Assembly: GCA_964252035.1 (NCBI GenBank)
Contig: OZ176211.1
DNA length: 64,000 bases
Strand: one strand, 5' to 3'
Origin: Podarcis erhardii
Lineage: Eukaryota
Shown: positions 1,685-23,085 of the stretch, one piece after another
Numbering within the stretch: position 1 is the first letter of the stretch
How the letters are laid out: every line of letters starts with the position of its first letter
Made by a program: the position numbers and the translations under genes
The notes under the pieces: generated by a model
Told to the model about the DNA's origin: nothing
Seen by the model: only the letters and a program-made list of their open reading frames with translations
Database searches by the model: none

Positions 1685-3047
1685 TATATGTTCTCTTTTG
1701 AGTGCTCCCAAAAGCTTACAGGACAGGGTGGGCTGGATCTCTGCAGGTGTAGACCAATCTGCCTTGGAAGGGGCATCGTTTGGGCATGTGCACCTTAATC
1801 CAAACAAGTCAGAGAGGCTCCAGTTCAAATCTGAGGTGGAGCAGGCAATGACATCCCACTCTCCAACTCTAGGACAAGTCGTTCTTGGCACCTGAGGCAG
1901 AAAATCCCAGAAAAAGCGGAGGGTCATCATAGGACAGCAGGAGAGCAGCTATGATGTCCTCAGAATCTTAGAGAAAGGCTGTGAATGTCACTTCTCAGGA
2001 ACCCTGCGTAGCCGCTTCCAGTTAGCATAGACAATACCCAGCTTGAGGAACCAACAGCCTGACTCACTATGAACCAACTTTCTACGTAAGTGTGTTTCCT
2101 CTTTCCTGGTAGTAAAAAATACAGCAATACTAAATCAAATCGCTAATGGTTTGTTTCCCATTTGTGAAACTGCCTCCCTCTGCCTGATTAAAGGACCGAC
2201 TCTGTAGCCCTTAGACATCCACTGCCACGTAGAAACATTTAATATCTTTTTACTGCAATCTGACCTGCTGAGCTGAGGAATGTTGCTAAACTAACTCAGC
2301 TTTTTACCACAACATTTTCTGCTGTTATTTGTCCCTTGTGCTACAAGTTTTTGATATTTTAGGACTGGCAATTTGGTTATGGTTAGGAAGGCCCTTAATG
2401 ACATCCTTTTTGGATGGTACCTCAGGTTAGGAAATTAATTCGTTCTGGAGGTCCGTTCTTAACCTGAAACTGTTCTTAATCTGAGGTACCACTTTAGCTA
2501 ATGGGGCCTCCCACTGCCGCTGCTACACAATTTCTGTTCTCATTCTGAAGCAAAGTTCTTAACCCAAGGTACTATTTATGGGTTAGCAGCCTCTGTAACC
2601 TGAAGCGTCTGTAACCCAAGCTACCACTGTATTGCAATCTGTGGTGTGTGGTCAGTGGACTAGCGGGACTGGGCTGGCCCCTAAACGTTCCTGGTAAATT
2701 AGAGGATTAAAACCTGGCACCTCTTTCCCAAAGCCTAGGAAGCTTCTGCCCAATTTAGGGAGGGAGGCATGATGCTCACTGCGATGTCACAACGTTACAA
2801 CATCACTCTCTGAAGCTGGCATCTCTGGCTGTGTTTCCTGACGAAAAATATCACAGCTGATTGCAATGCAGTTATTTCCCGACACACACACATACCAAAA
2901 AAAAAAATCACCACTGATTGCAGTGCAAGGGTCTGCCTCTGAAAAGCCTCCAGAAACTTCTACGAGGTCCTCAATCACACCCCTTACAATGAACAAGCAG
3001 CACGCAGCCAATGAATACTAAACAACCTTTTTGCACCCAGTGACTCT

Positions 3048-3429
3048 CTTTAAAGCCCTAAACAGCCTCGGCCCAGTATACCCGAAGGAGCATCTCCACC
3101 CCCATCATTCTGCCCGGATGCTGAGGTCCAGCGCCGAGGGCCTTCTGGTGCTTCCCTCACTGCGAGAAGCAAAGCTACAGGGAACCAGGCAGAGGGCCTT
3201 CTCGGTAGTGGCACCCACCCTATGGAACGCCCTCCCATCAGATGTCAAAGAGATAAACAACTACCTGACATTTAGGAAACATCTGAAGGCAGCCCTCTTC
3301 AGGGAAGTTTTTAATGTGTGACATTTTGATGTATTTTTAATCTTTGTTAGAAGCCACCCAGAGTGGCTGAGGAAACCCAGCCAGATGGGTGGGGTCTAAA
3401 TAATAAATTATTATTATTGTATTATTATT
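3048..3429 (+). mobile_element. L2-clade LINE 3' fragment
   Basis: [11 protein letters not shown]...[16 protein letters not shown]; (ATT)n tail. Confidence 0.85.
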
Positions 3430-5160: not shown

Positions 5161-5541
5161 ATGTTTGGGTTTGGGTGCTTCTTGTTGTGTTGTGTGATTG
5201 AGAGAGTGGCTTGTGCTACTATTGGGGAGTCTTCAAGGCACAAGCCAGTGACTGGGCAGCTGCAAAATGGCGCTAGCGAAGAATCTTCAAGGCAAGCTGA
5301 TGTACCTTCTCCTACGCAGCCCTTGACTTTGTTACCCACCAGCTCTCCGCGGCCTGTTGCGGTGCAATGCCACAAAGACGAAATGGTGATAGCCGTTCAC
5401 AGAGACCTGTTTGGGACCGGGCAGCTGATCCAAGCTGTTGATCTCCACTTAGGCCTGCAAGGCTGCCGATATACTTCTGCTGGTGCTTCTGACTTGATTG
5501 TTTTTGAGGTGGGGCTTCAAGAGTGTGGCATCAATCTACAG
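5161..5541 (+). CDS. ZP3: ZP3-like exon 1 (signal peptide, start of ZP-N)
   Basis: [11 protein letters not shown]...[10 protein letters not shown]...ECGINLQ, then donor CAG|gtaatg. Confidence 0.9.
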
Positions 5542-8500
5542 GTAATGTGAGACTTGTGTACAAATAAGATCCTTCTTGTGTATATATATATATATATGTG
5601 TGTATATATATTATATATATATATATGTATATGTGTATGTGTGTGTGTGTGTGTGTGTATACAGTGGTACCTCGGGTTAAGTAGTTAATTCGTTCCAGAG
5701 GTCTTAACCTGAAGCACCACTTTAGCTAATGGGGCCTCCTGCTGCCGCCACACTGCCAGAGCACAATTTCTGTTCTTATCCTGAAGCAAAGTTCTTAACC
5801 TGAAGCACTATTTCTAGGTTAGCAGAGTGTGTAACCTGAAGCGTATGTAACCTGAAGCGTATGTAACCCGAGGTACCACTGTGTGTGTGTGTGTGTGTGT
5901 GTATTCCTATATGCACTTACCTTGGAGTAAGTCCTGTTGTATTCAGTGGGGCTTCCTACTTTAGAGTGTTATTCCTGTGGGAGTTTCTGCCTAAGGTGCC
6001 GAAATATCTCCCTCTTCCCAGCAGAATAAAATGTAGCAATAATAAGTTACATAATAATTTGCTGCCCTTTTTATGATGTCGCAAACCTGAAGCAGCTGCC
6101 TTATTCTGCCTAATGAATAGGCTGTCCTGTCCTGTAAACAGCACTTTGGGGAGCAATTTGCAACTGAAAACTTATGCTGAGTCCTGCAGGTGTATCTTCT
6201 CTGAAAATTAAAAGTAATCACATGAAATGTGCTTGTTTGAATCCATTATTAGGGATGGGGAAATATATCAACTTGAGTTTTTCAGTTTGTTTTTTTTTCC
6301 AGTCATAAGTTCAGTTTGCTACACACACATTTCCACATAAGTTTGTGGGTTGTTGTTTTTTTTTTTAAGCTCTCACATTTTAGTGTGAATTCTGCTTTGC
6401 GTTCGTGCAGCAGTTTCCCCATAATGCAGTTTTATGTCATTTTCACCAGTGTATCAATTTATGTGCATACTTCACGCTAGTGTTTGCATTCTTATACACA
6501 TTACTTGACTTTCGATTTGCATTGTGAAATTTGGAGAAGTGAAAGTTCCAAAGGACAACTCCATTTCAGTTCACATATTGCTTGGCAAGCGTGGACTGGT
6601 TCGTTTCATCCTGAAAAGCTGAGTCTAATTTCTCCTCCATCCCTGGCCAGGAATGTAGTTCCTTGAAAATGCAGCTCACCAAAGTTATGCAAAAATTAAA
6701 AACCGGCCCTTAATCATCCCTTGTGAAAATAGCCTGACCTTAGTTACGCTCACTCCACAACCACTTTGTATTAATAGGTAACGGGCAATAACTCTGAACA
6801 CTAAAAATACAGAATACAGTGGTACCTCAGGTTAAGTACTTAATTCGTTCCAGAGGTCCATTCTTAACCTGAAACTGTTCGTAACCTGAAGCACCACTTT
6901 AGCTAATGGGGCCTCCTGCTGCCGCCACGCCACCAAAGCACGAGTTCTGTTCTCACCCTGAAGCAAAGTTCTTAACCTGAAGCTCTATTTCTGGGTTAGC
7001 GGAGTCTGTAACCTGAAGCGTATGTAACCCGAGGTACCACTGTATTGAAACCTGCGGTGAAGTGAATTGTCTAAAGACTACCGGGGTGCTTTATTCTTCC
7101 AGACAACAGCAGACTCCCTGTTCTACCACACAAGACTGTACTATAACCCAAGCTCTGCAAGCGGCCCTGGAATTGTAAGAAACAGCTCAGTAGAGATCCC
7201 TATTGAGTGCCACTACCCGAGGTGAGCATCATAGGCCACAGTTCAATAACCCACTTGCATGTCAACAGCCATTGAGTTGTAATTTCTTTTTCTTCTTAGG
7301 GAAGATAAGGTGGGCAGCAATGGCACCAAGCCCACCGGGGTTCCCTTGACTTCGACAAAGTCTGCAGAAGGAGGGTTCCGCTTTTCCTTGCGTCTGATGA
7401 CTGGTAAGGGAGATTCCAAACCTTGAAGAGGACAAAACAAAACAAATTCCTTCCAGTAGCACCTTAAAGACCAACTAAGTCAGTTCTTGGTATGAGCTTG
7501 AAGAGGACAGTGTGTCAGATACTATTTTAAGTCTCCCTCCTCTTCTTCCTTTCCTTTGTTCATTGTGGATGACTATAGATGACTGGAGTGCCGAGAGGGA
7601 GTCTACTCGATATTGGCTGGGAGACTATCTCCATATCCAAGCAGACGTCGAGAGGGAAGGAGACCATTTACCTCTCAGGCTATTGGTCGATAGCTGTGTG
7701 GCCAAACAGACACCAGAGGAAGATGCCAGCTTACAATATGCAATTCTTGACTTCCATGGGTAAGATTGGGGAGGAGGGGAATTGAGAGAGAGACTGACTA
7801 CCTTTAGTGGAACCCCTGGAAAGGGATTGTTACATGTCATTCCAATTTCTGAGCAGTGTGAGACTCCAGGAGTTAGTGATGGCTCTCTCTGGTGAAAAAC
7901 AGCATAGGGATTTGAGGGGTAAATTCCTGTTAGTGACCCAATCCTCACAGAAAGCAGAGGTTCTCTGTCTGCTTGCCCAGAGATTCACACAGAATCACTC
8001 CTGCCTATACCGACCTAGAATCAATTAAGGCCGCAATCCTAATGCAACTTACCTGGGAGTAAGTCCCTTTCAATGCAGGAAGACATGCCTTTGAGTGGTC
8101 GTGGTAAGGATTGTGCTGTAAGGCTGCAGTTCTACACACACCTTCTTGAAAGTAAACACCCTGGGCTTGCTTCTGCGTAAACATACATAAGTTCAGGTTG
8201 CACGTTTACATTCCCAAATAATTGCCACACTGGATTAATGCTCAAGCGTTTTTTTCCTGACTGTACCATCTTTGGACCCAGATGCCTGGTCGACGGGAGA
8301 ATTCATGATGTGAAATCCGCCTTCAAAATCCCAAGACCGCGCCTGGAAACACTCCAGTTCACCATAGAAGCGTTCAGATTTTCTGGGGACGTAAGGAACT
8401 TGGTGAGAGGACTCCTTCTTCTCACTAGCTTCCAGGCCCAGCCCTACCATTGGGCAGAATAAAAGTGATGGCAAGGGTGTTGAAGGGCAAGGCTGGGTGA

Positions 8501-11500
8501 TCCACCCTGTACCTCCTTAAGAGTGCCTGCTGTCCTTAGTAAGATTCAGCTGGCTGTGCAGTCCACTTCTTTCCATGCAGGCCCTATTTTGCCTTGCCCC
8601 TGGACAGCTGGCCCTGCTTACTTTTTTCATTTACAGTGAGATGGTGGCATTCCCCACTCTGACCCTGTTTAATTTCCCTTCAAGATCTACATTGCTTGCC
8701 ATCTGAGAGTCGTTGCGGCCGACAAAGGACCAGATCCTCTAAATAAAGCTTGTTCATTTAACAGCCAAAGAAGCCTGTAAGTATCGTAGCTTGCATTATG
8801 GGAAAGACAGGACTTTGAGGAGTACTAACGTGACCTTTTTGTATGTATCAGTTGGCTACCAGTAGAAGGCTCCGAGGACATCTGCAACTGCTGTGAAACT
8901 GGGAACTGTGTATCATCTAAAGGATGGCCCAGCACAAACAACCCCAGCAATCGCCGTACATCAGAACAGAGGGAACAAGTGACTTCGGGGTCAGGTATGC
9001 TCTAAACCTGGGCGGTGGGGAAACCTGTGATCCACCAGGTGGTGTTAGATTCTACCTGCCACCAGCTCCTTCCAGTATAGCCAGGTATAATTGGGGGTTG
9101 GGTCACATCCTACACCATGTTTATAAAGCACATGACTTCCCCCAAAGCATCCCAAGAACTACAGTTTGCTAATGGGGCAGGGGGTAAACTCCAGTTCCCA
9201 GGATTCTGTGGGGGAAGCCTTGGGCTTAACACCAGTCCTGAAAGATGTACATTGGCTCCCAGTACGTTTAAAAGTGTTGGTGCTGACCTTTAAAGCCCTA
9301 AACAGCCTTGGCCGAGTATACCTGAAGGAGCGTCTCCATCCCCATCATTCCACCCCCACTAAGGTCCAGCTCCGAGGGCCTTCTGGTGGTTCCCTCACTG
9401 CAAGAAGTGAGGTTACAGGGAACCAGGCAGAGGGCCTTCTCGGTAGTGGCACCATCTCTGTGGAAGTTTTAATATTTGATGTTTTATCGTGTTTTTAATA
9501 TTCTGTTGGGAGCCGCCCAGAGTGGCTAAGGAAACCCAGCCAGGTGGGTGGGGTATAAAGAATAAATTATTATAAGTCCAGCGTATGGATGTAACTTTGT
9601 ACCCAAGCAATAACTGGCCTGCCACAGCCTCCCGACCCCTGCTCTCAACTTACTCTATGGCAGTAGCTCAGCTACTGAGAACTGCAAACTACACACTAGC
9701 TGGATATTCTGGAACCTTCTGCATCTCTAAACTGAGTGGGAATGCTTGCATGTTGTCATAAGTGATGCTAAGAGCAATGCTATACATTTCCCATATTTCA
9801 AAGGTAAAAGCCGTGCGCATGGAGTTTCAAAAAATGTACAGTATTGTTTTCCACATTGCACAGAAAGCTTGTGGGACCAGCTCTTGCCTTTAACACCGGG
9901 GATAAGCTTGTTTTAAGGCTCTAAAACAACTCGTTCTGTTGTTCGCTTCTAGCTATCATTGACATCTCAGAAGGGGAAGCTGAGGCAGACCTTCTGGTGG
10001 GACCTCTCTTAATCCTCGATGCTCCTTGGGACCTCCAGAGAGGGGAAGTGGAAACAACAGACATGGGGGCCCAAGGTAAAAAAGGAAATGGCTAAATCGA
10101 AGGCTTGTGCTATGATAAAGTAGGGGTGGGGATCTGTGGCCCTCCACCTAACTTCCTGCAAGTGGGGAAATCCTGGAAGGGGACAAGAAGGGAAAAATTG
10201 CAGGGGAGGTGGTCAAAACAGATGAAGCCATGACTCCCTCTGCAACTATTGAGTTCAGACTTCTGGTGATAATGATCAGTTCCTTCCCAGGCAACCTCCT
10301 GAGGTGGACTGAATGGAGAAGTGGAGGTGCAGAGAGAAATTGGGGGGGCTGGCCCCCCACACACAACAGGTGTGCAGCCCCCCCCCAACAGAGAAGAGAG
10401 GTTCTGCTTGACACTTGAGGTGTAGGTTTTCAGGACCCACCCTATTCTTGTGACTGTAACTTGTTTTAATTTTTTAAATACTGAATTTTGAATTCTTGCC
10501 ACACACACCCCGGGACTTGCTGGTGAAAGGCAGGCAACAAATTTCATCACCCTCCTTGTCTTCATGTCTATGTGGCATTCCTAGAGAGTTTCAAGCCACT
10601 GACCAATGGAAGCCTCTCATCTAAGTCTTGCGATGGGAAGAAATGATCAGTTTTCTTCAAGTTTTGTGAAACATATTTACTTTGGAATTGGTGGAATGAT
10701 ACTTCTTGCAGGAAGGGCTATTGATGACAAATGGCCTGGAGGCTGAGAACTTGCTATTTGCATAGAATGTACTTGTCTAGAGGCTACAACATACAAAACC
10801 CTTGCTAGTTCTATGTTCTGGAGGATGGATGGCGGCTAACAGATTGAGGTTGAATCCTGACAACACAGAAGTACTGTTTTTGGGGGACAGGAGGCGGGCT
10901 GGTGTGGAGGACTCCCTGGTCCTGAATGGGGTAACTGTGCCCCTGAAGGACCAGGTGCGCAGCCTGGGAGTCATTCTGGACTCACAGCTGTCCATGGAGG
11001 CGCAGGTCAATTCTGTGTGCAGGGCCCCTGTTTATCAGCTCTGTCTGGTACGCAGACTGAGACCCTACCTGCCTGCATACTGTGATGCATGCTCTAGTTA
11101 TCTCTCGCTTGGACTACTGCAATGCGCTCTACGTGGGGCTACCTTTGAAGGTGACCCGGAAACTACAACTAATCCAGAATGCGGCAGCCAGACTGGTGAC
11201 TGGGAGCGGCCACTGGGACCATATAACACTGGTCTTGAAAGACCTGCACTGGCTCCCAGTACGTTTCCGAGCACAATTCAAAGTGTTGTTGCTGATCTTT
11301 AAAGCCCTAAACGGCCTCAGTCCAGTATACGTGAAAGAGCATTTCCACCCCCATTGTTCTGCCCGGACACCGAGGTCCAGTGCCGAGGGCCTTCTGGCGG
11401 TTCATGAGTACTTAACTAAACTATACTGCTAGGCTAGGCCAGAAAGTTCAGTTTATATCTGTCTTGTTGTGATTCCTTTCTTAAAGGTGAATCTCATGTG

Positions 11501-13253
11501 ATAGAAGCCGAGGCTGACTCTACAGTTGGACGTCAGTTTATCCTCAAGGCAGACGAAGGACTTGGATGGCTCCTGGATTCTGATAAGACTGTGACAACAA
11601 CTGGTAAGGTCCTTTTAGAGAGCCAGTGTGGTGTAATGGTTAGAGAGATGGACTAAGACCTGGAAGAGCAGGGTTCGAATCCCCAACCAGCCTTTAAGCT
11701 CACTGGGTGACCTTGGGCCACAGTCACTCACCGTCTCTTAGTCTAGTTGTGAAGATGAAATGGGAAGGAGAAGCATGCACACTACCTTGATATCCTTGGA
11801 AGATAAAAGTGGAATATAAATGTAATAAAATAAATAGATGGCTCAATATAAGAGAATCCATAGATTCCCCCCCCCCCCAAGGCTCTTGCCTCTCAGTAAC
11901 TGTAGTCATGTCTTCTGCTCCACCTTTTGCAATTTTGCTCTAAGAAATCTGCTCCTATAATTACTACAGCTATGGTGATTTTCTTTCCTAAACCCATATA
12001 CTGGGATCATGGGAAGTGTTAGGGAGGGTGTCTACCCAAGTAAATTCTGAGGCCAGAATGGGATAGAAAAATGGGACCTGAAACAAAATGTTGCAGTGTA
12101 TATAATGCTGCTATTTAGGATTCAAAAACCACCAGTCAGTCAACTCCAGAGCAAAAACAATCCTCATTTGACTGTTTTTTTGGAGGGAATCCCTCTAAAG
12201 TTTGTGGGTGGGTGGTGCTGTTTAGGCTACATAAGGTCTGGCACTCACAGATTGGAAAGACAGTCGTACCTTGGATCCCGAACGCCTTGCGAGTCAAACG
12301 GTTTGGCTCCCGAGACCCGCAATCCCGGAAGTGGGCGTTCCAGTTTATGAATGTTCTTTAGAACCCGAACGTCCAACGTAGCTTCTGATTGGCTGCAGGA
12401 GCTTCCTGCAGCCAATCGGAAGCCGCACCTTGGTTTCCAAACATTTTGGAAATCGAACGGATTTGCAGAATGGATTCCATTCAAGTTCCAAGGTACCACG
12501 GTAGAGAGGTGAAGATCAGAATTATAATGAATGGCTAATTGTAGCTAACGCAGAACAAATCATGAATGGCTAATTGTAGCTAATGCAGAACAAATCAAGC
12601 AGTTAAAAGCAACAGGAATTGTAACTTCCTTCCTTCCTTCCTCCTCCTTTTTAAAGCCCTGTAAGACTTTTTAAAAAGCAAAATGGTGGCTTTGCCTCTG
12701 AGCCTCCAAGGTTGCTGTTCTTGACAAACTCTTTGACAAGCCAATGCCTTAACGCTCCTATTCCCTTGACTGTAGATGATGCACCACACACCAAATCTGA
12801 AAATGTTGTTGAGGCCAAGCTAACCTCTGCTACAGATGAAAGCTTGCGTGAACTGGCACCCCCTGTGGAGATAACAAAGTTGTCCCTGCAAGGTAATGGA
12901 CATAAATGAATGCATGGCACCAGTGGCGTAGCATGGGGGGTGCAGGGGGGGCCGGCCGCACCGGGCGCAACATCTGGGGGTTAGGGAAATCCACGAGTTA
13001 GGGGGCGCAAATCCACGGGTTAGGGGGCGCAAATTACTTGCCTTGCCCGGGTGCTGATAACCCACGCTACGCCACTGCATGGCACCGTTTTCTAAAGGGG
13101 TTCGGTAGCAAACCATGGGAGAGGGAGCTCTTGGTTTTAATACTTCTTAAACTCTTTTTAGGCACTGCATCACAGAAGGGGACTGTCCTGGAACGAATCC
13201 AAACCACAGCAGCTGCAGTCATGGTGCTTATCCTATTGAGCTGTATATTCTAG
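5161..13253 (+). CDS. ZP3: ZP3-type zona pellucida glycoprotein (ZP3/ZPC paralog), 11 coding exons, about 529 aa
   Basis: Exons 5161-5541, 7103-7221, 7300-7403, 7579-7759, 8282-8402, 8685-8776, 8852-8994, 9953-10075, 11487-11603, 12776-12892 and 13162-13253 are all GT-AG and join in frame (1590 nt including stop). Features: signal peptide, 4 ZP-N Cys, IHP FSLRLM, DFHGCLVDG and the ZP3-specific cluster [10 protein letters not shown]. Which paralog this is (ZP3 or ZP3-like) is not resolved. Confidence 0.9.
5581..5659. repeat. (TA)n/(TG)n microsatellite; (GT)n also at 5881-5902
   Basis: Read directly; the two arrays flank the MITE at 5662-5881. Confidence 0.95.
5662..5881. mobile_element. Tigger/pogo-like MITE family A; copies at about 2412-2629, 6817-7042, 15006-15231 (inverted) and 26847-29048 (split by L1)
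   Basis: TIR CAGTGGTACCTC...GAGGTACCACTG, TA TSD, about 225 bp, shared internal ctgaagcaaagttcttaacc. Confidence 0.9.
6817..7042. mobile_element. Tigger-like MITE family A
   Basis: TIRs and TA at 6815-6816 and 7043-7044. Confidence 0.9.
7103..7221 (+). CDS. ZP3: ZP3-like exon 2
   Basis: ttcttccag|[16 protein letters not shown]...[10 protein letters not shown]|gtgagc; 119 nt. Confidence 0.92.
7300..7403 (+). CDS. ZP3: ZP3-like exon 3 (linker and IHP)
   Basis: [34 protein letters not shown]|gtaagg; 104 nt. Confidence 0.9.
7579..7759 (+). CDS. ZP3: ZP3-like exon 4
   Basis: DWSAERES...[10 protein letters not shown]...ILDFHG|gtaaga. Confidence 0.92.
8282..8402 (+). CDS. ZP3: ZP3-like exon 5
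   Basis: [40 protein letters not shown]|gtgaga. Confidence 0.92.
8685..8776 (+). CDS. ZP3: ZP3-like exon 6
   Basis: [30 protein letters not shown]|gtaagt; 92 nt. Confidence 0.92.
8852..8994 (+). CDS. ZP3: ZP3-like exon 7 (Cys cluster, degenerate furin site)
   Basis: [47 protein letters not shown]|gtatgc. Confidence 0.9.
9136..9217. repeat. Short hairpin repeat
   Basis: 32-nt arms cttcccccaaagcatcccaagaactacagttt and aaactccagttcccaggattctgtgggggaag. Confidence 0.7.
9227..9573 (+). mobile_element. L2-clade 3' fragment with internal deletions (ZP3 intron 7)
   Basis: LKDVHWLPV...FKALNSLG; same tail as the 3048 copy. Confidence 0.85.
9953..10075 (+). CDS. ZP3: ZP3-like exon 8 (canonical EHP)
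   Basis: gttcgcttctag|[41 protein letters not shown]|gtaaaa; phase 1-1; not in the ORF track. Confidence 0.82.
10822..11403 (+). mobile_element. L2-clade ORF2 fragment, frameshifted and 3'-truncated (ZP3 intron 8)
   Basis: [12 protein letters not shown]...; [19 protein letters not shown]...[10 protein letters not shown]...HWLPV. Confidence 0.9.
11487..11603 (+). CDS. ZP3: ZP3-like exon 9 (second EHP-like exon)
   Basis: cctttcttaaag|[39 protein letters not shown]|gtaagg; phase 1-1; 117 nt. Confidence 0.7.
11618..11837 (+). mobile_element. MIR-like CORE SINE, starting 14 nt after the ZP3 exon 9 donor
   Basis: A-box gtgtggtgtaatggtt, B-box ggttcgaatcc, core gtgaccttgggc, aataaa tail. Confidence 0.75.
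12261..12501. mobile_element. Tigger-like MITE with internal palindrome
   Basis: CAGTCGTACCTTGG...CCAAGGTACCACGG; internal CTTCTGATTGGCTGCAGGA-GCT-TCCTGCAGCCAATCGGAAG. Confidence 0.8.
12527..12596. repeat. 35-bp tandem duplication
   Basis: ATGAATGGCTAATTGTAGCTAA(C/T)GCAGAACAAATC x2, one mismatch. Confidence 0.95.
12776..12892 (+). CDS. ZP3: ZP3-like exon 10 (stalk)
   Basis: cccttgactgtag|[39 protein letters not shown]|gtaatg; phase 1-1; 117 nt. Confidence 0.62.
12921..13077. mobile_element. hAT MITE in the last ZP3 intron
   Basis: Perfect 12-bp TIR CAGTGGCGTAGC; perfect 8-bp TSD CATGGCAC at 12913-12920 and 13078-13085. Confidence 0.92.
13162..13253 (+). CDS. ZP3: ZP3-like terminal exon (hydrophobic C-terminus)
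   Basis: ctctttttag|[30 protein letters not shown]; phase 1 matches upstream exons. Confidence 0.65.
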
Positions 13254-13429
13254 ATACGTAGATAAATCCATTTGCTTGTATATTGAAAATGGAGGGGTTT
13301 TTTTCTTGCAGCCTGAAACTGTAAAGCCGGCAAGAATTGTTTATGTAATGTCTGCTGCACAAGCAAAGCTTGAGGCCAGGTGGTTCATCCTCTGCAAGGG
13401 CTTACGCAAAATGGAAAACTGAAATGAAA

Positions 13430-13435
13430 AATAAA
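13430..13435 (+). terminator. Candidate polyadenylation signal of the ZP3-like gene
   Basis: AATAAA 177 nt after the stop, followed by GT-rich tgtggtattcactgttgttttc. Confidence 0.6.
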
Positions 13436-15005
13436 AGGCATGTGGTATTCACTGTTGTTTTCAATCGGCAAGTGATGCATAACAATATGCAATAGATGTT
13501 GTTGTTTTCCCTCCATTTACATTGAGGTCTCCTTTGAATTGGATAGTGCAGAATAATAGTCGTCTACATTAGTTGCTTTACTCACAAAAGCTAAATAGCT
13601 ATGATTTTATGTAAAATCTCATCACAGTGAGACTAATAACACAGCTTTTGTTGGAAGCCGAACTGCAGCAGAACAGCTGCGCAGCATGCAACTAATACAG
13701 GGGGAAATGGAAATCAACGCCTTCAGTCGTAACACTCCATTGGCAGAGAAATTCTGCCTTCCATTAGAAAACTGCCCTCTCAAATCTTCTTACAGAAGTT
13801 AAAAAGTCCTGTCGTAGAAGAACCTCAAATTATTGAGGTTCTTTTAAAAAATGGCTCAGTGGTGCTAACAGCTGAAATGCATAGCCTCAAGCCTATATAG
13901 TAAAACAAAACAGACAATCTGAGAAGGTAAAGTATAATTTTCTGCTGTAACTTGCAATTTAAAACTGGTATTACTCGGGTTTGAGTTACCTTAAGGGCTT
14001 GGTTAGCGATACAAATTCAACAAATGAAGATGTTTAAAGGCATATTTTCTCACATTTTCGCCAGGGAGGGTGGCTAGCAAGTGGCCATGTGTTCCCCTTT
14101 GCAGAGAACAGTTCTTGGTTTCCAACGTCTGCAGAGGGCAGTCCTCTATTTGAAATACTGGACACTGTGTACTTGATATGCTAAATATATTGTGCATTGG
14201 CCAAATGTGACATGCAATGATAGCAGGAACATCTGTAAACTAGATTGGAACATCTATCATCTGATCCTAGTTGTTGAGTCGGGGTGTATGTGTGTTTCTA
14301 ATCTCCATCTTGCTCCTAATTAGCAGGGATTCTTTGCAGTACTCATGTTTTTAAGTGGAAATATTGTGTTTTATGCCTCAAGACTAGGAGTACTACCCTA
14401 CCTTTGGCGAAAAAGCATACCAGCTTTTCAATTATCAGGGGAAGTCATGTGCTTGGCACAACCTTGTTTAACAGCTATTTAACAGGCTGCTGTGTGTCAA
14501 AGGAAGCAGAGCTAAAATCATTTCATTTGAACTTAGACCTTTGGCAAGCTCTGTTTAGTTTGTTTAGTGTCTAACCAGAAGAGCTGGTATTTTGCCATTT
14601 GTATGCCAGCAGCTGAAGTCAAGAGCTTTTGGTCTTTGTCTGCTGAGTCATCATTCGGAGTCCCTGTAACATCTTGCTTTCATAGCAGTTTGCTGCTGTT
14701 GGTTTAAAGCTAACAATGATTGCATGGGGGGGGGGGGGCTACAGTGACAGCTCAGAGCTCGACTTTAAAACCTCCCTCTTCAGCCTGACCAGAAAAAGAG
14801 AAATATTTTTAAAGACCCTGTTTATTATTCAAAAGAAAGCACCTGCTGAAATAGTCCCCAGAACAGTATAGCTGTAGAATACAAGCAAAGTTCCATTCAG
14901 TTTTCTTATCTCTTTTGTAGAGGTAAGATGTTAATGGCCTGTTTTAAAATTTCAGTTATTTGACCAAGCCCTTGTAGGCCTTTAACCATTTATGCTAGGT
15001 AAATA

Positions 15006-15231
15006 CAGTGGTACATCAGGTTACATATGCTTCAGGTTACAGACTCCGCTAACCCAGAAATATTACCTCGGGTTAAGAACTTTGCTTCAGGATGAGAACA
15101 GAAATCGTGCTCCGGCAGCCCAGCGGCAGCAGGAGGCCCCATTAGCTAAAGTGGTGCTTCAGGATAAGAACAGTTTCATGTTAAGAGCAGACCTCCGGAA
15201 CGAATTAAGTACTTAACCCAAGGTACCACTG
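15006..15231. mobile_element. Tigger-like MITE family A, opposite orientation
   Basis: TIRs and TA TSD. Confidence 0.9.
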
Positions 15232-15783
15232 TAATTCCCCCCCCCAAAAAAAACCCACACACACAAGTACTATAGGTCAACTTCTAAAAGTCTATTTAAT
15301 ATTTGAGAAGACTGATAGGTATTGTCAGTCTTCTTCCTGTTATCCTGAAAGCTTCAAACAGCTGAGGCCTATCCACTCCATATAAATATACTGATGACTC
15401 GCTAATATAGTGACAAATCTTATTGTTGCTTGAAGAAACAGTATACTGCTGCCAGCATTTTATCCCTGCTTCCTTCCTGTTTCTTGTTGTACCAGATACT
15501 ACTTCTACATTTATGCTTCATTTGGGGGCAAGGCTATGTTTACAGCAACCATGCTGAACTCAGGCACCGTAAACAATCATTTTGCAGTATCTAAGTCCAT
15601 GTAGATCAGCAATGTTTGCTTTCTTCATCCTTGAGACGTACACACGCCCTCACTCTGAACAGGCACCCAGTTGCCCTCCCTCTCACCTTCCCAGCGGCTA
15701 GTCTTATCTCCTGCTTCCCTTCCACTGCGTGCTTCCTTTTCTATCCCTTTGATCACTGCTTTTATCATACAATTTAAAAAGTC

Positions 15784-16079
15784 TGAAATATACTCGGAGT
15801 TGAGTGTGGATTTCATGCTCTTTATTCAGCTCAGAGTAGTGAGGAATGGAAGTTCCCCCGAAATGTCTGCTTTATATACATTATTTACACAATGGGCCCC
15901 ACGTGATTGGCTAATTCTGGGATTCTCCTGTAGGCCAATCAGGTTGCGGATTCACTTCCAACTGGAGTTGGATTGGGTGGCTCCTGCGGACCAATCAGAC
16001 TGCTGCATTCTGAATCCTATTGTTCTAGGACTAATCAGACTGCTGCATTCTGGATCCTATTCAACTCAGTCCATAACCC
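15784..16079 (-). mobile_element. Solo LTR-like element
   Basis: On the minus strand: several CCAAT boxes and a ~40-nt tandem duplication, then TATATAAA (15871-15878), AATAAA (15821-15826) and a CA end. Flanked by AGTC at 15780-15783 and 16080-16083. The other terminus is degenerate. Confidence 0.65.
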
Positions 16080-16398
16080 AGTCCTTTCTGTAGATGGCGG
16101 AAGGACAAACGCCATCCTGTGAAAATTTTATCCATATACTGACAATGGCATATCAACCCCTTCCAAAGGTTTACATTGGTTTTGTAGGACTTATTCTGAA
16201 GGGCAGAAATGGGGAGCCAGTGGTGTTAGACTCCAACTGCTATCATCCCTGTCCACTGGCCATGCTGGGGATGATGGGAATTGGAGCTCAATAACATCTG
16301 GAGGGTCATGGATTTCCCATTCTACCCTAGGGTGTCAGAGGATGTCTGACATTCACAAGAGCTTTCCCAGACAGCAACCTTTTTTCCAACAATGGCAT

Positions 16399-16530
16399 GG
16401 AGATTAGCTCAGTCGGTAAAGCATGAGACTCTCAATCTCAGAGTTGTGAGTTTGAGCCCCTCATCGGGCAAGAGGAATCCTGCATTGAAAGGGGCTGACC
16501 CTTGAGGTCCCTTGCAATTCTGTGATTCTA
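16399..16530 (+). mobile_element. tRNA-Lys-derived SINE with CR1-like 3' tail; minus copy at 44777-44913; tail-only copies near 879-925, 19327-19397, 59040-59095 and 60615-60680
   Basis: Head TAGCTCAGTCGGTAAAGCATGAGACTCTCAATCTCAG resembles tRNA-Lys(CTT); tail cctgcattg...gtccctt...tgtgattcta. Confidence 0.8.
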
Positions 16531-18138
16531 AGTAAAGTGAGGGGCAAGTATGCAAACAGTAACTATGGTGCCAGAAGAAGAGCAGTCCTAAACACCTGAT
16601 CCTAGTGAACAATTCTTACTTTTTTTTAATAGTGAATGAATTGTCTACAACATGATTCAAAGATGTGGGTAATTCTATTTTTCCTTGTTCAAAATTGCAA
16701 TAGCGGTTCTGGAAACTATAAATGACTCTACTCCCTTTTCATCACAACAAATCCAGTAAAAAAAACCCAAACATGATTCAAATGACTATCGGAAGAAAAT
16801 AAAACAGAGCTTTCCAAAGGTTTCATGTTGGTGACACGCTTTTTAGACATGCATCATTTCATGACACAGTAATTCAGTTTTACTGTACTAGCAAACCGCA
16901 GGTTAAACCCAACCCCTTTCCAGCCCTGGGAGAAGCACAGGGAGTGTTTGTATGACACACCTACACACTGCAGCTGACACACTAAAGTGTTTGGAAAGCT
17001 CTGAAATAAAAGGAAAAAACGGTTAAGCTAGTCGTTGCATTCTGCATTTCTGCTACCAACCAAGAGATCAGGTGTGAAATGTCATAACAATACACAAAGG
17101 TCAGCTATTAATCCCGTATCAAGGCTAGAGAGTGTGTAGTTGGTGGTTTTCAGTTTTTTCCTGCTTGCATCCAGAAAAGTAACATGCGTGTCCAGGGTGA
17201 CTGGATGTTACTGTGAGAGAGTCTCAACGTGCAACATGCTACACCACCTGTTTTCAAGGGCAATGGAGTTCATGCGGAAAACTGTGTTTGTATAGCAGTA
17301 AAAGTAATTGATACAGGATGCTGAACTGATCCTCAAGTTGGGCTGAGAAATGCAAGCTTCTTCTGACAGCACCAACGCTACCCGTCCTTCCTTCCCAACA
17401 GCATCAAAGGTAAATGGAACATTCTCTGGGTTCGAATTACAAGAGCTAGAAGATGAGACCAGTTTTTTAGATGAGGAAATGGGAAAGGCAAAAATGCAGG
17501 CAGGACTCTTCAACTGACACCGCTGGCATGGATGGCTAAAGCATAAAATGCTCAGGACGTTTTCCCCCGTTGGGGACAGCCTTCCACAGATGGGGAGAGA
17601 TGTATCTGGATTTTAAAATGGGATTAGACAAATTCATGGAGGATAATACTACTAGTGGTTACTAAATCATGATCAGTACTATTTTTCTAGAAAAATAGGC
17701 GCCGGGACTCACCATGAATGCCTCTCTTGTTCTCTTATGACGACAATGGCACCCACCTGAGAGGTGCTGGAACTCAGTTCCAGTGAGTTCCAGCTGGAAA
17801 AAAAAGACCTAGGTAGCTAAATGCTAGATCCAGGAGCAGAGACAACATTGCCCCTGCCATTCACATTTACCGGTCAGTTTATGGAGAATTACATGTCATA
17901 TCTTCCTAGAATGAGAGCTAATGAGTGCCTATGAGTAACAATTTCAAAGGAAGGAGCTACGTGGCAGTGAAGCATTACTGCCCTACGAGCATTCAAGTTT
18001 TTAGGAAGAACTCTCAAAAACAGGCAGTAAAAAAAGAGAGGCAAAGCTGTTCAGTTGTAGGTTTGGGACTGTGCTGGCCTCCCTATCCTTTCCTGAGCCA
18101 CCCTTTGGAGTGGTAGGGATGTCCTACTGGACAAACTA

Positions 18139-18630
18139 CCGTATTTTTTGCCCCATAGGACACACTGACCCATAGGACGCACCAAGTTTTTTTGGGGGGA
18201 AATAAAGAAAAAAAATTATTTCCCCCCCCAGGCGCTTGTGGGGCCGACAGCGGGGAGAAGCGCTCTTCTCCCCGCCGCCCGCCTGCAGACCAGGTCCGGG
18301 GACAGTGGGAAGACGCGCTGCGCCTCCCCGCTGTCCCCGGAGCTTGCGGGGCTGGCGGCCGGGAGAAGCACGCGTCTCCCCGCCATCAGCCTCCAAACCA
18401 CATCGGGAGACAGCGGGATGGCGCCGTTCCGCCTCCCCGCTGTCCCCCGACCTTGTGGGACTGGCGCTGCGGCTCTCCTGAAGCCTGGAGGGCGAGAGGG
18501 GTCGGTGCGCACCGACCCCTCTCGCTCTCCAGGCTTCAGCGAAAGCCTGCATTCGCCCCATAGGACACACATGCATTTCCCCTTCATTTTTGGAGGGGAA
18601 AAAGTGCATCCTATAGGGCAAAAAATACGG
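18139..18630. mobile_element. Tc1/mariner-type MITE with GC-rich internal repeats
   Basis: 22-bp TIR CCGTATTTTTTGCCC(C/T)ATAGGA (21/22 match); TA TSD. Confidence 0.9.
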
Positions 18631-18650
18631 TACTTGATTCCCGATCACCT

Positions 18651-19150
18651 GAGCCAACATGGTGTAGTCATTAAGAGTGCTGGACCTGGGTGACCAGGTT
18701 TCAAATCCCACCCCCCCCACCCCACTTCAGCTATGAAGCTCACTGGCTGACCCTGGGCTAGTGAATCCCTCAGTCTAACCTACCTCACAGGGTTGTTGTG
18801 TGAAGAAAATGGGGAGACAGCACTAATTAATGGGTAGATCAGGGGTCAGCAACCTTTTTCAGCAGGGGGCCGTCCACTGTCCCTCATACCTTGTGGGGGG
18901 CCGACTATTTTTTTTTGGGGGGGGGAGATCGAATTCCTATGCCCCACAAATAACCCAGAGATGCATTTTAAATAAAAGAACACATTCTATTCATGTAAAA
19001 ACACACTGATTCCTGGACCATCCATGGGCCAGATTTAGAAGGCGATTGGGCCGTATCCAGCCCCCGGGCCTTAGTTTGCCTACCCATGTGGTAGATGAAC
19101 ACTGCCTTGAGCTCCTGGGATAAAAGGCAGGATATAAATGTAAATAAATG
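18651..19150 (+). mobile_element. MIR-like SINE interrupted by a hAT MITE
   Basis: Head and core at 18651-18830; tail resumes near 19097. Confidence 0.7.
18840..19088. mobile_element. hAT (Charlie-like) MITE
   Basis: CAGGGGT...CCCATG; 8-bp TSD GGGTAGAT/TGGTAGAT. Confidence 0.85.
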
Positions 19151-19397
19151 AGTACATGAATGAGCTCAGTCAACAGTATTAATATTTGGAGCAGGGGGGC
19201 ATCATTTACAAAACTGAGCCCATGAATATTGGCACGGAGTTTAACGCACAATCCAACAAAGATAAATAAATTCTTCCCCACCCCATGGGGCATAATCCCC
19301 CCCCCCTTTTTTTAAAAAAGCACTGGGCAAAACATTCCTGCATTGCAGGGAGTTGGACTAGATGACCCTTGTGACCTTTTCCAATTTTATGATTCTG

Positions 19398-19520
19398 CAA
19401 CATGTCTCTCCGGTATTAGGTCTCTATAGCCACAGCTAGCGCTGTAACTGCAACGGCTTGACGTCCCACCCTGAAATGTGCACTCTCCCATTGTCTCCTG
19501 AGACAGGCGGATGCCGACAA
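19398..19520 (+). mobile_element. RTE 3' end, same family as the 41.2-41.8 kb copy
   Basis: Shares catgtctctcc...gtctcta(t/c)agcc and attgtctcc...gatgcc(g/a)acaa. Confidence 0.65.
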
Positions 19521-19649
19521 ATGCATTTTGTGCTCCCACTTTGTATTTTCAATGTTGTGAACAGCCCTGCGATCTTTGGGTGAAGGGCTGTATACATCCT
19601 GTTCCCCCCAGGGCCCGTACCTTATTCCCCCAAAAGTGACCGGAAACGA

Positions 19650-19860
19650 AGCCTATAGACCTGAGAGAGACCTGCAGTGTTTATAAGAGTTTATATTTAA
19701 AGTAGATAATTAAGTGAGCAAACTAAATGAATTTAGATAATTAAATTTAAAAAAATTAATTTAAGAAGCCGCAGAAAGAGGAGGAAGTCAAACTTTGAAA
19801 TGTTAAAATGATTGTAAAATTAATGAAAAGTATAAATTTGAAGAGTATAAATAAAAACCT
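19650..19860 (+). mobile_element. Probable L1 3' UTR fragment just upstream of the DNAJC13 promoter
   Basis: AT-rich tail with gaggaagtc and AATAAA, organised like the other L1 3' ends; not aligned in detail. Confidence 0.4.
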
Positions 19861-19939
19861 TTATAAATATTATCCTGGGAATGGAGAGAGAGGGAACCTC
19901 CATTCCCAGGAGAAGTCTACCTCACCTCCCCCTCCCCGG

Positions 19940-20370
19940 CCAGAGCGTGGGGCGTTCCCTCCCTTCGCTCCGCCCCTCCCTCCAGCTGCGCTCTCTGCGC
20001 ATGCCCACTTCCCTCCGGCAATGGGAAGCGAGGTGAGGGGAAGGCGGCCGATTAACTGAGCGGGTCAGCTGAGCTCGTCGCGTGACCAGGCCGGGCAGGC
20101 GGCGGCGGCGGCGGCGGCCTGGGCCTGGACTGCGCGTGCGCGCGGAGGGTGGCTCCCCTGCCCGAGCGAAGATGGCGGCCTCCAGAGCTAGGCTCTGAGG
20201 GGAGGCGGCAGCGCTTCGGAGGGGTAGCGGCTGCAGCCCAGGGGGAGGAGGACGAGGAGAAGCCCTCTCGGCGGCAACGGAAGCAGCTGCGGGGGCTGCT
20301 GGCTCGCGGCGTCCCTTGTCAGTGCGAGGCTTTGGGGGCGCGGGACTGGACGGCGCCGCTTCCCGGCCAG
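19940..20370 (+). promoter_or_regulatory. DNAJC13: CpG-island promoter and non-coding exon 1 of DNAJC13
   Basis: GC/CpG-rich stretch with a GC box, NRF1-like TGCGCATGC (19996-20004) and YY1 motif AAGATGGCGGC (20169-20179). It ends in donor CAG|gtaaat at 20370/20371. Confidence 0.8.
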
Positions 20371-22196
20371 GTAAATAAATGGGTCCCCCCCCCCCTTGAG
20401 GGCACAAAAAAGAGCCTGAAGGGAACCGCCGAGGGCTTTGCATGCAGTGGGGGGCGGGGAGGGGAGGGAAACACGGACCCCCCCCCTTATTCATCCGAGC
20501 CAGTGACTTCTCTTTTCTCCCCACCCCCAATTCAGTAAGCACCCCCTCCCTATTTATCCTCGGTAAATGGTGGCAAACAGGTTGGGGTGGGGGTTAAAAC
20601 AGGTGTCTAGCCCTCATTTCCGCACTTGCTCCAGGGAGGCTGGCACCCACCTTGCAAAACCCCCCTTTTTTTTCTTTCCCTGTGGCCAAAGCAACAGGGG
20701 AGAAGCGGGCTTCTCACTATTATAGCATGTTAACAGTTGTGTTTCCAAGCACAAAAGCCTTCATGCTTCCACAGTTGTACGTATCAATGTGTTCGGAACG
20801 GTTCCCTTGTTTTGGGGGCACCCCCTTTGCTTGGCTGCCCCAGTGCTGCAAAGGTGGTGGGTTCAAACCCCTGCCAGAAACTTTCATGCGCTGGCTACAG
20901 TTCATCTTTCCCACGGCTTGTCGCTTCCTTGCATGCTCCATCCAGTCTTTTGGGAAGAAAATTCATCGACGGACATAAAAATGGTATAGTCAGCTTATTG
21001 TGTTTAATTTCCACCCGCCTTGGAGTTTTCTTTAGAAATGTGGTAAGGTAGATGAATTATTGGGAGGTGGACAGAATTTGTGCACAATATCTCCTGAATT
21101 GCATGATGCTGTGATTGAGAACTGCATCTTCACTTCCATTCCAAATGGAAGTTCCACATCCAATATGTGTTTCGAATCCTGGGCTTGTATTGTAGGGTTA
21201 GCAAGGGTGTTTTATATAATTCACCACAAAGTAGGGAGTAATTTTTCTTCAAGGAAACGGCACTTACACTTCTGCACTGCAAGCCGTGGCTTTTAAGAGA
21301 CTCTACTTGAGAGCTGCTTTTCTCACGCTGAGCCAGAATGGAAAAAGAAACAATCAATATATATAATAGACTTTAAACAAGATGTTAATGTATGTGCTGT
21401 CTTTGGCATCCAGGAATTGATACAAATAATTTGAAAGCAATTCTGGAATGTCCCCCACCTTCTGAGTAATTTGAATGCATGTTCACATGCATGAGTATCT
21501 GAGTAAATGTTTTTCCACTTGCCATCATTTAATCATTAACACCCAGAGGTAAGCTGCTTTCTGCTTTTTTTGTCCTTGTAATTTTTTATCTGTTGCATTT
21601 TCCCAGAAAGCCCACAACCCAGCTAACTTTTGTGGTAGATTGGCGAATGAAATAACTGTGGCAATTGGGCCATCTGGCAAAGGAGTGGCAGTATCTTTTA
21701 ATTCCATACATAATTTGATGAATGCAGGAGCCCATGTGGTTATTCTCCTAGGAAAGTATGCAAGTTAATGTGTAAAATGCATAACCACAGTATATTCTGG
21801 AAACTGGATCTAGATAAGGCAAATAAGTTTTTCTTCTGAACCATATGTATGCTTTTTAAAAAAAGTTTATCAGCTTGTAGTCAGTTACAGTGGTTTATTA
21901 TTAAATTTGTATAGCACCCTTTATCTGAAGATCACAGGATGGTTCACAACAACAAAAATACAAGAGAACCCAACCCAAAATACATAATAAAAACAAGAAC
22001 AAAAACAAACCAGTAACATGCCACTCACAAACACATTTGAAATGACATAGAATATTAATCAGCCCAAGGCCTGGTTATCAGCCTTGTAGTGTCAATGTGG
22101 AATTCAAAGACAGGAAAAGATACAACTTGGTAAAAATCTTTAACTATTTGTCTTGATGCTACTAGTGGTAGACCTTGGGTTTCCCAAGTTTTAGCA

Positions 22197-22546
22197 CAGG
22201 AGTCAACAAACTTACTGCGCCTTGGGCCGGTGTCTCCAGCACTGATCGCGCGGTGGGCCGGGGGAGCGCGTGCCCATAAGCATGGGCACACGCTATTTCC
22301 GGTGCACTTCTGGGTCGGAGGAGCACTGGAAATAGCTTGTGCACATGTGCATGGGCCTCCTCCAACCCGGATGTGCACCAGCAATAACGCTTGCGCATGC
22401 ATACAAGCTATTTCTGGTGCTCCTCCAACCCAGAAGTGAGCAGCAGCGCTGCACCAGTAAGAGCAGGCGGTGGGGGGCGCTGCGGACCGGATAAACGAGT
22501 TCCTCAGGCCTTATCTGGCCCGCGGGCCTTAGTTTGGGGACCCCTG
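22197..22546. mobile_element. hAT MITE
   Basis: CAGGAGTC...GACCCCTG; perfect 8-bp TSD TTTTAGCA. Confidence 0.9.
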
Positions 22547-22789
22547 TTTTAGCATCTTATTGGAAGCTTTGGTGGGTTTGGGTTTGTAGTGTACAGGGCA
22601 ATCCTATATATGTCTACTCAGAAGTAAGCCCCATTGAGTTCAGTGGGTGGGCCTTAACTATTGGGTAAGAATATTTGGAACTACAATCTTAAACATTTAT
22701 TCCTTTATAATGGGTTCTGTGTGCTGGATGACCATTTCCATCATCCTTGGTCAGTATGGCCAGTAGTCAGGGGTGATAGGAATTGTGTT

Positions 22790-23085
22790 GTGATGGCTCC
22801 CCATTCGTGGAATGCTCTCCCCAGGGAGACTTATCTAGTGCCTTCATTACATGTGTTTAGGTCCCAGGTGAAAACATTTCTCTTCAACCAGGCCTTTGGC
22901 TGATTATCATTTTATGGCCCTGTAAATGTATTTTTGGGAAGAGGATTATTGGTTTGCCTTTGTTTTTGTATTATGTATTTTCTGTTCTCATTTTGTATTT
23001 TTATGTTGTGAACCACCCTGTGATCTTCAGAAGAAGTGTGGTATACAAATTTAATAAATAATAATACTAATAGTTCAGCAACATC
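22790..23085 (+). mobile_element. Older L2-type 3' end; related copies at about 21893-22078 (-), 37740-38130 (-), 37380-37500 (+) and 40230-40285 (+)
   Basis: Shared tail tgtgaaccaccc...gatctt...gaagggc/tggtatacaaattta. Confidence 0.6.

Follow-up and report, generated by a model that had tools for sequence, protein, structure and literature searches.

Precursors built around a zona pellucida (ZP) module must be membrane-anchored in order to be cleaved and to polymerise, egg-coat proteins included (PMC7737619). ZP3 is described as having a transmembrane domain of ~20 aa followed by a short cytoplasmic tail (PMC8391237). The precursor of uromodulin is anchored by glycosylphosphatidylinositol (GPI), and hepsin cuts it at a non-furin site; the propeptide that bears the external hydrophobic patch (EHP) then leaves and the module polymerises (PMC7737619). 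Alpha-tectorin is also GPI-anchored and shed, and replacing its GPI anchor by the ZP3 helix alters the mode of release and matrix building in mice (10.1101/2024.01.04.574255). Here we describe an 11-exon ZP3-family gene in a 64,000-nt stretch of Podarcis erhardii DNA (contig OZ176211.1 of assembly GCA_964252035.1; "the window" refers to this whole stretch). Its last coding exon ends the protein in a short hydrophobic run with no residue behind it. We propose that the gene is a squamate-specific ZP3 paralogue whose product carries a GPI-attachment signal and is shed in the manner of uromodulin, an explanation to which, taken whole, we assign a probability of about 0.45.

The gene shares with canonical tetrapod ZP3, or ZPC (mouse, chicken, other squamate, turtle, crocodilian and bird), a signal peptide, ZP-N and ZP-C domains, conserved cysteines including CxCC, an EHP after the cleavage loop, and a last exon that encodes the membrane-anchoring end. 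Canonical ZP3 has an R-x-x-R site, one EHP, a hydrophobic run of ~25 residues and a basic tail of at least five residues, whereas the squamate clade described here lacks R-x-x-R, carries a second EHP copy and an extra acidic linker exon, has a run of 16-21 residues without a tail, and forms a separate, long-stemmed clade whose gene lies beside DNAJC13. With uromodulin, GP2 and alpha- and beta-tectorin it has in common a ZP module, a non-furin cleavage site, an EHP, a juxtamembrane stretch and a C-terminal hydrophobic signal with no cytoplasmic part; in uromodulin and tectorin, the anchor presents the precursor to a surface protease (PMC7737619; 10.1101/2024.01.04.574255). Unlike our gene, these four are neither ZP3-type modules nor egg-coat genes, and their GPI anchors have been shown experimentally, whereas the squamate anchor is predicted from sequence rules; we claim no similarity between the signals themselves. 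Teleost ZP3-type proteins (ZPC, choriogenin L) are likewise ZP3-family members that do not follow the plan of a transmembrane helix plus a tail. Many fish ZP3-type forms end soon after the cleavage site without a hydrophobic anchor, whereas the squamate clade strictly keeps a hydrophobic end. Since teleost forms have also left the helix-plus-tail plan, the anchor is a variable part of the ZP3 family.

The last exon, its use in mRNA and its conservation

The last exon is entered through the acceptor ctctttttag|GC at 13160-61 and is joined to exon 10, whose donor CAAG|gtaatg follows 12892, by a split Gly codon (G|GC). After the split Gly come 29 residues and then the stop. The hydrophobic end has 14 residues; with two preceding Thr residues, the uncharged run amounts to 16, and nothing stands behind it. 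The features of this end are as follows (X1, X2 and X18 are public runs described below).

13162..13253, + strand: exon 11, the last coding exon, encoding the membrane-anchoring end (splice sites, transcript contigs, orthologues)
12892 plus 13162-63 (Gly codon) and 13164-13169 (Thr and Ala), + strand: candidate omega region G-T-A (Gly in 10 of 10 species; omega and omega+2 rules of 10.1101/838680; a predicted assignment)
13203..13250, + strand: uncharged hydrophobic run of 16 aa, reaching the stop (run scoring)
13251..13253, + strand: stop codon TAG (no difference listed in X1, X2 or X18; position shared by 7 of 10 species)
13430..13435, + strand: AATAAA, putative poly(A) signal, the sole AATAAA or ATTAAA in 13254-14600

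Four small public runs were placed on 11450-13600. None is recorded as RNA, yet three of them hold spliced contigs. These three (X1, X2 and X18) come from three organisms, all related lizards, and each has one contig over exon 9, exon 10, and exon 11 with its 3' untranslated region (UTR). The joints, 11602>12775 and 12890>13160, are both GT..AG, and the longest contig, at 2667 letters, is long enough for a whole mRNA. The fourth run, X17, yields intron repeats only. No difference is listed at the stop, and inside the hydrophobic run the substitutions seen are all conservative (Val to Ile, Met to Val, Ile to Val, Ala or Leu). The contig of X1 stops at 13440; those of X2 and X18 continue past the AATAAA at 13430, and the X18 contig has a 15-nt deletion just behind it. 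The 3' end may differ between species, or a long 3' UTR form may exist.

We considered an alternative last exon that encodes a transmembrane segment, and rejected it: no other hydrophobic run of at least 15 aa occurs in any + frame from exon 7 to 22.9 kb (8995-22900). In the four runs placed on 11450-13600, no contig joins 12892 to another exon, with the reservation that contigs cannot reveal rare isoforms. Because the contigs splice only to exon 11 and there is no rival hydrophobic run, the objection that 12892 might be spliced to a different transmembrane exon, which the first-pass annotation of this DNA had itself raised, fails. The structural claims of that annotation, namely a last exon at 13162-13253 that ends in a 14-residue hydrophobic run at the stop with no basic tail, and an AATAAA at 13430, are borne out by the sequence and, for the ending, by the contigs and orthologues.

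A matching ending is present in Podarcis muralis, Zootoca, Rhineura, Hemicordylus, Sphaerodactylus, Liasis and two Crotalus species. The groups that have it are lacertids, an amphisbaenian, a cordylid, a gecko, snakes and, as read from DNA, a skink (Tiliqua). The individual endings are:

Podarcis: 31 residues
Zootoca: ..AILSCVF
Rhineura: 31 residues
Hemicordylus: QGIASEKGTLLGRLLTIAAGILMFVLLSYISWNTYLIC
Sphaerodactylus: QGRTSEKQSFQENFMAIAAGTLMHVLLRYIF
Liasis: KGNASMKGTILGQILTTTTGILFLLLFCSIV
Crotalus: QGNASVKATILGQILTTATGILLFFLFSSIA
Tiliqua, read in the DNA right after exon 10: (G)IASDKGTVLGKLLTIAVGLLIHVLLAFLGTHF, with the stop overlapping AATAAA

All follow one pattern: a conserved Gly-x-Ala/Thr-Ser/Pro, a polar stretch, and an uncharged run at or near the stop. 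The Gly is conserved in 10 of 10 species, with Ala at +2 in nine and Thr in one, and is followed by exactly 29 residues in seven of the 10. The uncharged end run measures 16-21 residues in eight of the 10 species. No species has Lys or Arg behind the run; in the gecko, an Arg lies four residues before the end. The Liasis model P0123 (508 aa) lacks a counterpart of the acidic exon 10 linker, and Crotalus horridus P0224 (697 aa; ..DESDEIYSGGGDLNIETSP..) carries several tandem copies of it. Across these proteins, the length of the tether appears free to vary and that of the last exon does not. In Tiliqua scincoides (L001), the NCBI model skips the conserved last exon at 18061-18161 and uses 18469-18654; this model is either a mis-model or a real soluble isoform.

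In a tree of 54 ZP3 proteins, the genes with this ending group together in a single clade that is exclusively squamate, receives 100% support and is set on a long stem. Branching within the clade matches the species tree, with the gecko first. The other sauropsid ZP3s are its sister group, and one mammal-like ZP3 serves as outgroup. Since the ending is shared by a squamate clade in which the gecko branches first, it had already arisen by the common ancestor of the squamates sampled, which include geckos. We found no iguanian or anguimorph orthologue among the best 120 of 623 hits, nor with a python C-terminal query, and the Naja models are truncated; the iguanian and anguimorph absence may reflect gene loss or missed annotation. 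ZP3 subfamilies ZP3.1, ZP3.2 and ZP3.3 have been published (PMC6262864). We could not match the squamate clade to any of the three from the supplement text of that paper, which gives neither neighbour genes nor Anolis accessions.

To compare this ending with those of canonical ZP3, we fetched 235 ZP3-family proteins, of which 113 were scorable, with more than three residues behind a hydrophobic run. The 113 include the second P. muralis paralogue, P0181 (...GYLIACKKKATPILL...), other squamate paralogues, turtles, alligator, chicken ZPC and mammal-like ZP3. In these proteins the median run length is 25 residues (quartiles 21-26) and the median tail length 11 (minimum five), with Lys or Arg among the first six tail residues in 94%. 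These values agree with the published description (PMC8391237), and with the statement in the first-pass annotation that tetrapod ZP3 has a transmembrane helix and a short tail. Among the fetched ZP3 proteins, a hydrophobic run that reaches the end occurs in the squamate clade only, besides one truncated turtle model. Where canonical ZP3 has ~20 aa of transmembrane domain and then a cytoplasmic tail, the P. erhardii gene has 16 uncharged residues and nothing behind them. Separately, a common origin with the canonical transmembrane exon was considered: local alignments to eight canonical ends were mostly at the level of shuffled sequences (z<2 in 38 of 40 pairs, maximum 2.8). With alignments at that level, 'KGTVL' and '..SC' were dropped as marks of common origin, and a common origin is not demonstrable from sequence.

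A rebuilt propeptide and its predicted anchor

The exons from the end of ZP-C up to the last exon are listed here. Structural statements refer to an AlphaFold model of the Podarcis muralis orthologue P0121, which is 95% identical to our 529-aa P. erhardii model; the mean pLDDT (predicted local distance difference test score) is 64.6.

8852..8994, + strand: exon 7, end of ZP-C (CNCCETGNC) and the loop that bears the furin site in canonical ZP3 (tblastn; AG/GT; loop disordered in the P0121 AlphaFold model)
8949..8978, + strand: remains of the consensus cleavage site, 10 residues with no R-x-x-R (alignment with canonical ZP3)
9953..10075, + strand: exon 8, EHP copy 1, with the 12-residue patch at 9982-10017 (tblastn; AG/GT; confident beta strand in the P0121 model)
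11487..11603, + strand: exon 9, EHP copy 2, with the 12-residue patch at 11510-11545 (tblastn; transcript contigs X1, X2 and X18 join exon 9 to exon 10)
12776..12892, + strand: exon 10, acidic, poorly conserved linker of 39 residues plus the G of the split codon (acceptor ctgtag|AT, donor CAAG|gt; joints in three runs; disordered in the P0121 model)

Starts of exon 10 at 12679 or 12712 were rejected: their reading phase does not fit, and the orthologues fix the start at 12776.

At the aligned cleavage site, members of the squamate clade read EQREQ, EQWKQ, RQ-KQ, HKKQ, EKKL or QRKQ, and ZP3 proteins elsewhere read RFQR, RFRR, RVGR or RNRR. The R-x-x-R furin consensus is thus lost throughout the clade; every species still has one or two basic residues at that position. 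Since R-x-x-R is lost, furin is an unlikely protease and processing is uncertain. With two EHP copies placed after the ZP module and ahead of the anchor, the protein is laid out like a precursor with a removable propeptide. In the P0121 model, the ZP module is confident, the loop at 358-389 is disordered, and EHP copy 1 is a confident strand (392-405) that is docked; the region of EHP copy 2 is drawn as a moderate-confidence helix, followed by a disordered stretch (457-509) and a terminal helix. As read from the sequences, the propeptide is rebuilt relative to canonical ZP3: it lacks the furin consensus, carries two EHP copies and an extra linker, and ends in a short, tail-less hydrophobic stretch that agrees with a GPI signal.

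GPI-attachment signals have been divided into five regions: a polar, flexible stretch, the omega site, omega+2, a spacer, and a hydrophobic stretch that runs to the end (NetGPI; 10.1101/838680). At verified sites, omega is S, N, G, D, C or A, omega+2 is mostly G, A or S, and the spacer spans omega+3 to omega+9 or more (10.1101/838680). The ending of the squamate clade fits this layout in several respects. The stretch before the candidate omega site is polar, with an acidic exon 10 that is disordered in the P0121 model; Gly is usable as omega, with Ala or Thr at +2; and a charged spacer (K, E, R, Q) of 11 residues, plus TT, leads to a 14-16-residue hydrophobic end at the stop. At the other end of the protein, a putative signal peptide also agrees with the layout. 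The lacertid uncharged run, at 16 residues, is short in comparison to the 21-26 of canonical ZP3. On these grounds, the ending is probably a GPI-attachment signal, taking GPI attachment of any kind together, and the candidate omega site would be the conserved Gly.

We propose the following sequence of events. Exon 11 would encode the membrane-tethering end of a long C-terminal propeptide. In the precursor, the ZP module would be followed by a disordered loop bearing a degenerate basic site, then by EHP copy 1 (docked on ZP-C) and EHP copy 2, and after these by a disordered, acidic linker, Gly-x-Ala-Ser, a polar stretch and a short terminal hydrophobic helix. Transamidase cleavage in the endoplasmic reticulum (ER), at or beside the conserved Gly whose codon spans the 12892|13162 splice, would leave the precursor on a lipid anchor in the outer leaflet. 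The anchor would hold the precursor at the surface until a protease, probably not furin, cuts upstream of EHP copy 1, as in uromodulin. This cleavage would release the ZP module for use in the egg coat, with the GPI-linked propeptide staying behind. The exon, its splicing in mRNA, its conservation and its contrast with the other ZP3s sampled are observed; in the scheme built on them, we infer GPI attachment, the omega site, cleavage and shedding.

Rival readings of the ending

Several observations weigh against the proposed scheme. The furin consensus is lost, and cleavage upstream of the EHP is assumed. With the conserved Gly as omega, the spacer measures 13-15 residues, at the long end of the rule. 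This putative spacer is unusually conserved: Lys5 is invariant, Ala2, Ser3, Thr7 and Leu9 are nearly so, and lacertid and python share ~10 of the first 16 residues. Such conservation is unexpected, because a signal that is removed in the ER should not be so conserved. The gecko run contains His and Arg. In snakes and scincoids, a weakly polar stretch of 23-24 residues with one polar residue (TILGQILTTTTGILFLLLFCSIV in snakes) could span the membrane, and AlphaFold draws a 21-residue terminal helix in P0121 (residues 511-531). These last two points favour the alternative that the hydrophobic end is kept as a single-pass, type I helix without cytoplasmic residues, which would tether the propeptide much as the canonical ZP3 helix does; so do the six extra uncharged residues of Hemicordylus, and the well-conserved stretch before the run, as would be expected of a part that is retained. 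A tail-less helix of this kind would have neither a cytoplasmic residue nor a positive-inside signal in nine of the 10 species, and in lacertids Glu, Arg and Gln shorten the run to well below canonical length. It would also give no reason for the fixed 29 residues after the Gly in gecko, lacertids, amphisbaenian and snakes. We regard it as rather unlikely. A different concern is that the exon is mis-modelled, or is a rarely used 3' end, with the main product ending elsewhere. The NCBI Tiliqua model P0122, which ends in another exon ~300 bases downstream without a hydrophobic run, speaks for this, as does the inability of contigs to show rare isoforms. By contrast, transcript contigs of three organisms use exactly exon 13162-13253, seven independent gene models agree on the ending, the Tiliqua DNA holds an intact exon with its own poly(A) signal, and the window has no other candidate transmembrane exon. 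This concern is largely refuted already, and we rate it as highly improbable: exon 13162-13253 is a genuine, conserved last coding exon that is used in mRNA.

The suggestion of a GPI-anchored ZP3 in the first-pass annotation has to be separated into its parts. Membership of the ZP3 family, the lack of a long transmembrane segment or basic tail, and the fit to the GPI layout all stand; attachment itself is a prediction, and the long, conserved spacer counts against it. The further suggestion that the protein is retained on the surface rather than shed is unsupported: the EHP is kept, in two copies, and retention does not follow from a GPI anchor, because GPI-anchored uromodulin and alpha-tectorin are shed. 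On this analysis, shedding appears more likely than retention. Since the furin consensus is lost in the clade, some probability stays with an anchored (by GPI or otherwise), non-polymerising ZP3-like surface molecule that is not shed into the egg coat. All clade members have lost R-x-x-R at the canonical place, two EHP copies could lock ZP-C more firmly, and the long, acidic and disordered tether resembles that of a surface-displayed protein. In a more specific form, this would be a ZP3 on the uromodulin/tectorin plan, lipid-anchored, with two locking EHP copies and without a furin site, tethered on the surface of the oocyte or follicle cells as, for example, a membrane-proximal layer that binds sperm or nucleates matrix, and freed only by a regulated protease or a GPI lipase rather than constitutively incorporated into the coat. 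Against a retained surface molecule stand the basic residues kept at the aligned site in every species, given that hepsin cuts uromodulin at a non-furin site (PMC7737619), and the only partial harm to the zona that is reported for loss of the mouse ZP3 furin site (PMC12701285). Moreover, retention of the EHP makes most sense if the EHP is to be released, and the ZP-N and ZP-C cores show the kind of conservation seen in polymerising ZP3. We consider either form improbable, and we favour shedding of a GPI-anchored precursor.

The gene, its locus and its meaning for ZP3 biology

Our exon model spans 5161-13253 on the + strand and encodes 529 aa, the length given in the first-pass annotation; every junction is AG/GT. 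It was built by placing relatives (P0121 and P0001; tblastn) on the window and then reading the junctions. Exon 1 alone as query retrieved a 527-aa Rhineura protein (P0001), and a word search with P0001 retrieved the 532-aa 'ZP3-like' protein of P. muralis (P0121) and further relatives. Family, database and structure steps used single exons or P0121 rather than the joined 529-aa translation, which served for a check of frame and length, for the orthologue comparison and for one row of the tree. The best match among solved structures was chicken ZP3 (PDB 3nk3; E 2.7e-15 with exon 1). Pfam ZP-N was found in exons 1 and 2 (E 5e-9) and Pfam Zona_pellucida (ZP-C) in exon 4 (E 1.3e-7); PF23344 and PF00100 are present in all close relatives, and 623 of 623 hits are ZP3 or ZP3-like. 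By these sequence matches, the gene is a member of the ZP3 (ZPC) family. A stretch of 19 N-terminal residues ahead of the mature part was judged by eye to be an ER signal peptide; the P0121 AlphaFold model has a helix at 4-22. The exons upstream of the propeptide are:

5161..5541, + strand: exon 1, start codon, signal peptide and first half of ZP-N (3nk3 match, Pfam ZP-N, donor CAG|gt)
7103..7221, + strand: exon 2, second half of ZP-N (Pfam ZP-N; tblastn with P0121 and P0001; AG/GT)
7300..7403, + strand: exon 3, ZP-N/ZP-C linker (tblastn; AG/GT)
7579..7759, + strand: exon 4, start of ZP-C (Pfam ZP-C; AG/GT)
8282..8402, + strand: exon 5, ZP-C (tblastn, 93% identity to P0121; AG/GT)
8685..8776, + strand: exon 6, ZP-C (tblastn; AG/GT)

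Downstream on the same strand lies an exon of DNAJC13/RME-8 (35748-36170, +; Pfam RME-8_N, E 1.3e-20), and a GC-rich stretch at ~18000-20600, upstream of DNAJC13, has the look of its CpG island or promoter. Upstream of the Tiliqua orthologue lies a histidine acid phosphatase gene. The locus beside DNAJC13 is presumably different from the canonical ZP3 locus, judging by the human map.

The introns and flanks of the gene contain several repeats. In the last intron, 12921-13077 resembles a miniature inverted-repeat transposable element, with 17-nt terminal inverted repeats (CAGTGGCGTAGCATGGG / CCCACGCTACGCCACTG) that are 94% complementary and an internal unit, gttagggggcgcaaatccacg, that occurs twice; its high depth in contigs of all four runs points to a widespread interspersed repeat. 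Intron 9 holds a repeat at 12242-12529 that contains an almost perfect palindrome of 20 nt (12381-12423) between outer inverted arms (12260-12282 and 12480-12502). In each of the four runs its depth far exceeds that of anything else (up to ~39,000), and loose ends are numerous; the element is very abundant, and is probably transcribed or located inside transcripts. A third repeat, which resembles a short interspersed element or the tail of a long interspersed element (LINE), has three copies (3031-3321, 9136-9495 and 11061-11429), two of them in introns of the ZP3-like gene. Elsewhere in the window, a lysine-rich, transposon-like open reading frame of 530 aa (27204-28796, - strand) has no Pfam match and is probably the C-terminal part of a LINE ORF2.

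The cytoplasmic tail of mouse ZP3 reportedly prevents premature pairing with ZP2. The alpha-tectorin swap indicates that the kind of anchor changes how and where ZP-module precursors are released (10.1101/2024.01.04.574255). Protein sequences of the squamate clade are already public as 'ZP3-like' gene models, and we found no description of this ZP3 ending in the literature searched. If our reading is correct, these genes encode a natural ZP3 that has no tail, in which the helix is shortened to a GPI-like signal, the furin site is lost and the EHP is doubled, a rebuilt state kept since the deepest split among the living squamates sampled, that of the gecko from the rest. The clade would thus offer a ready comparison for the role of each part of the ZP3 propeptide, and it is a candidate for lineage-specific egg-coat biology in lizards and snakes.

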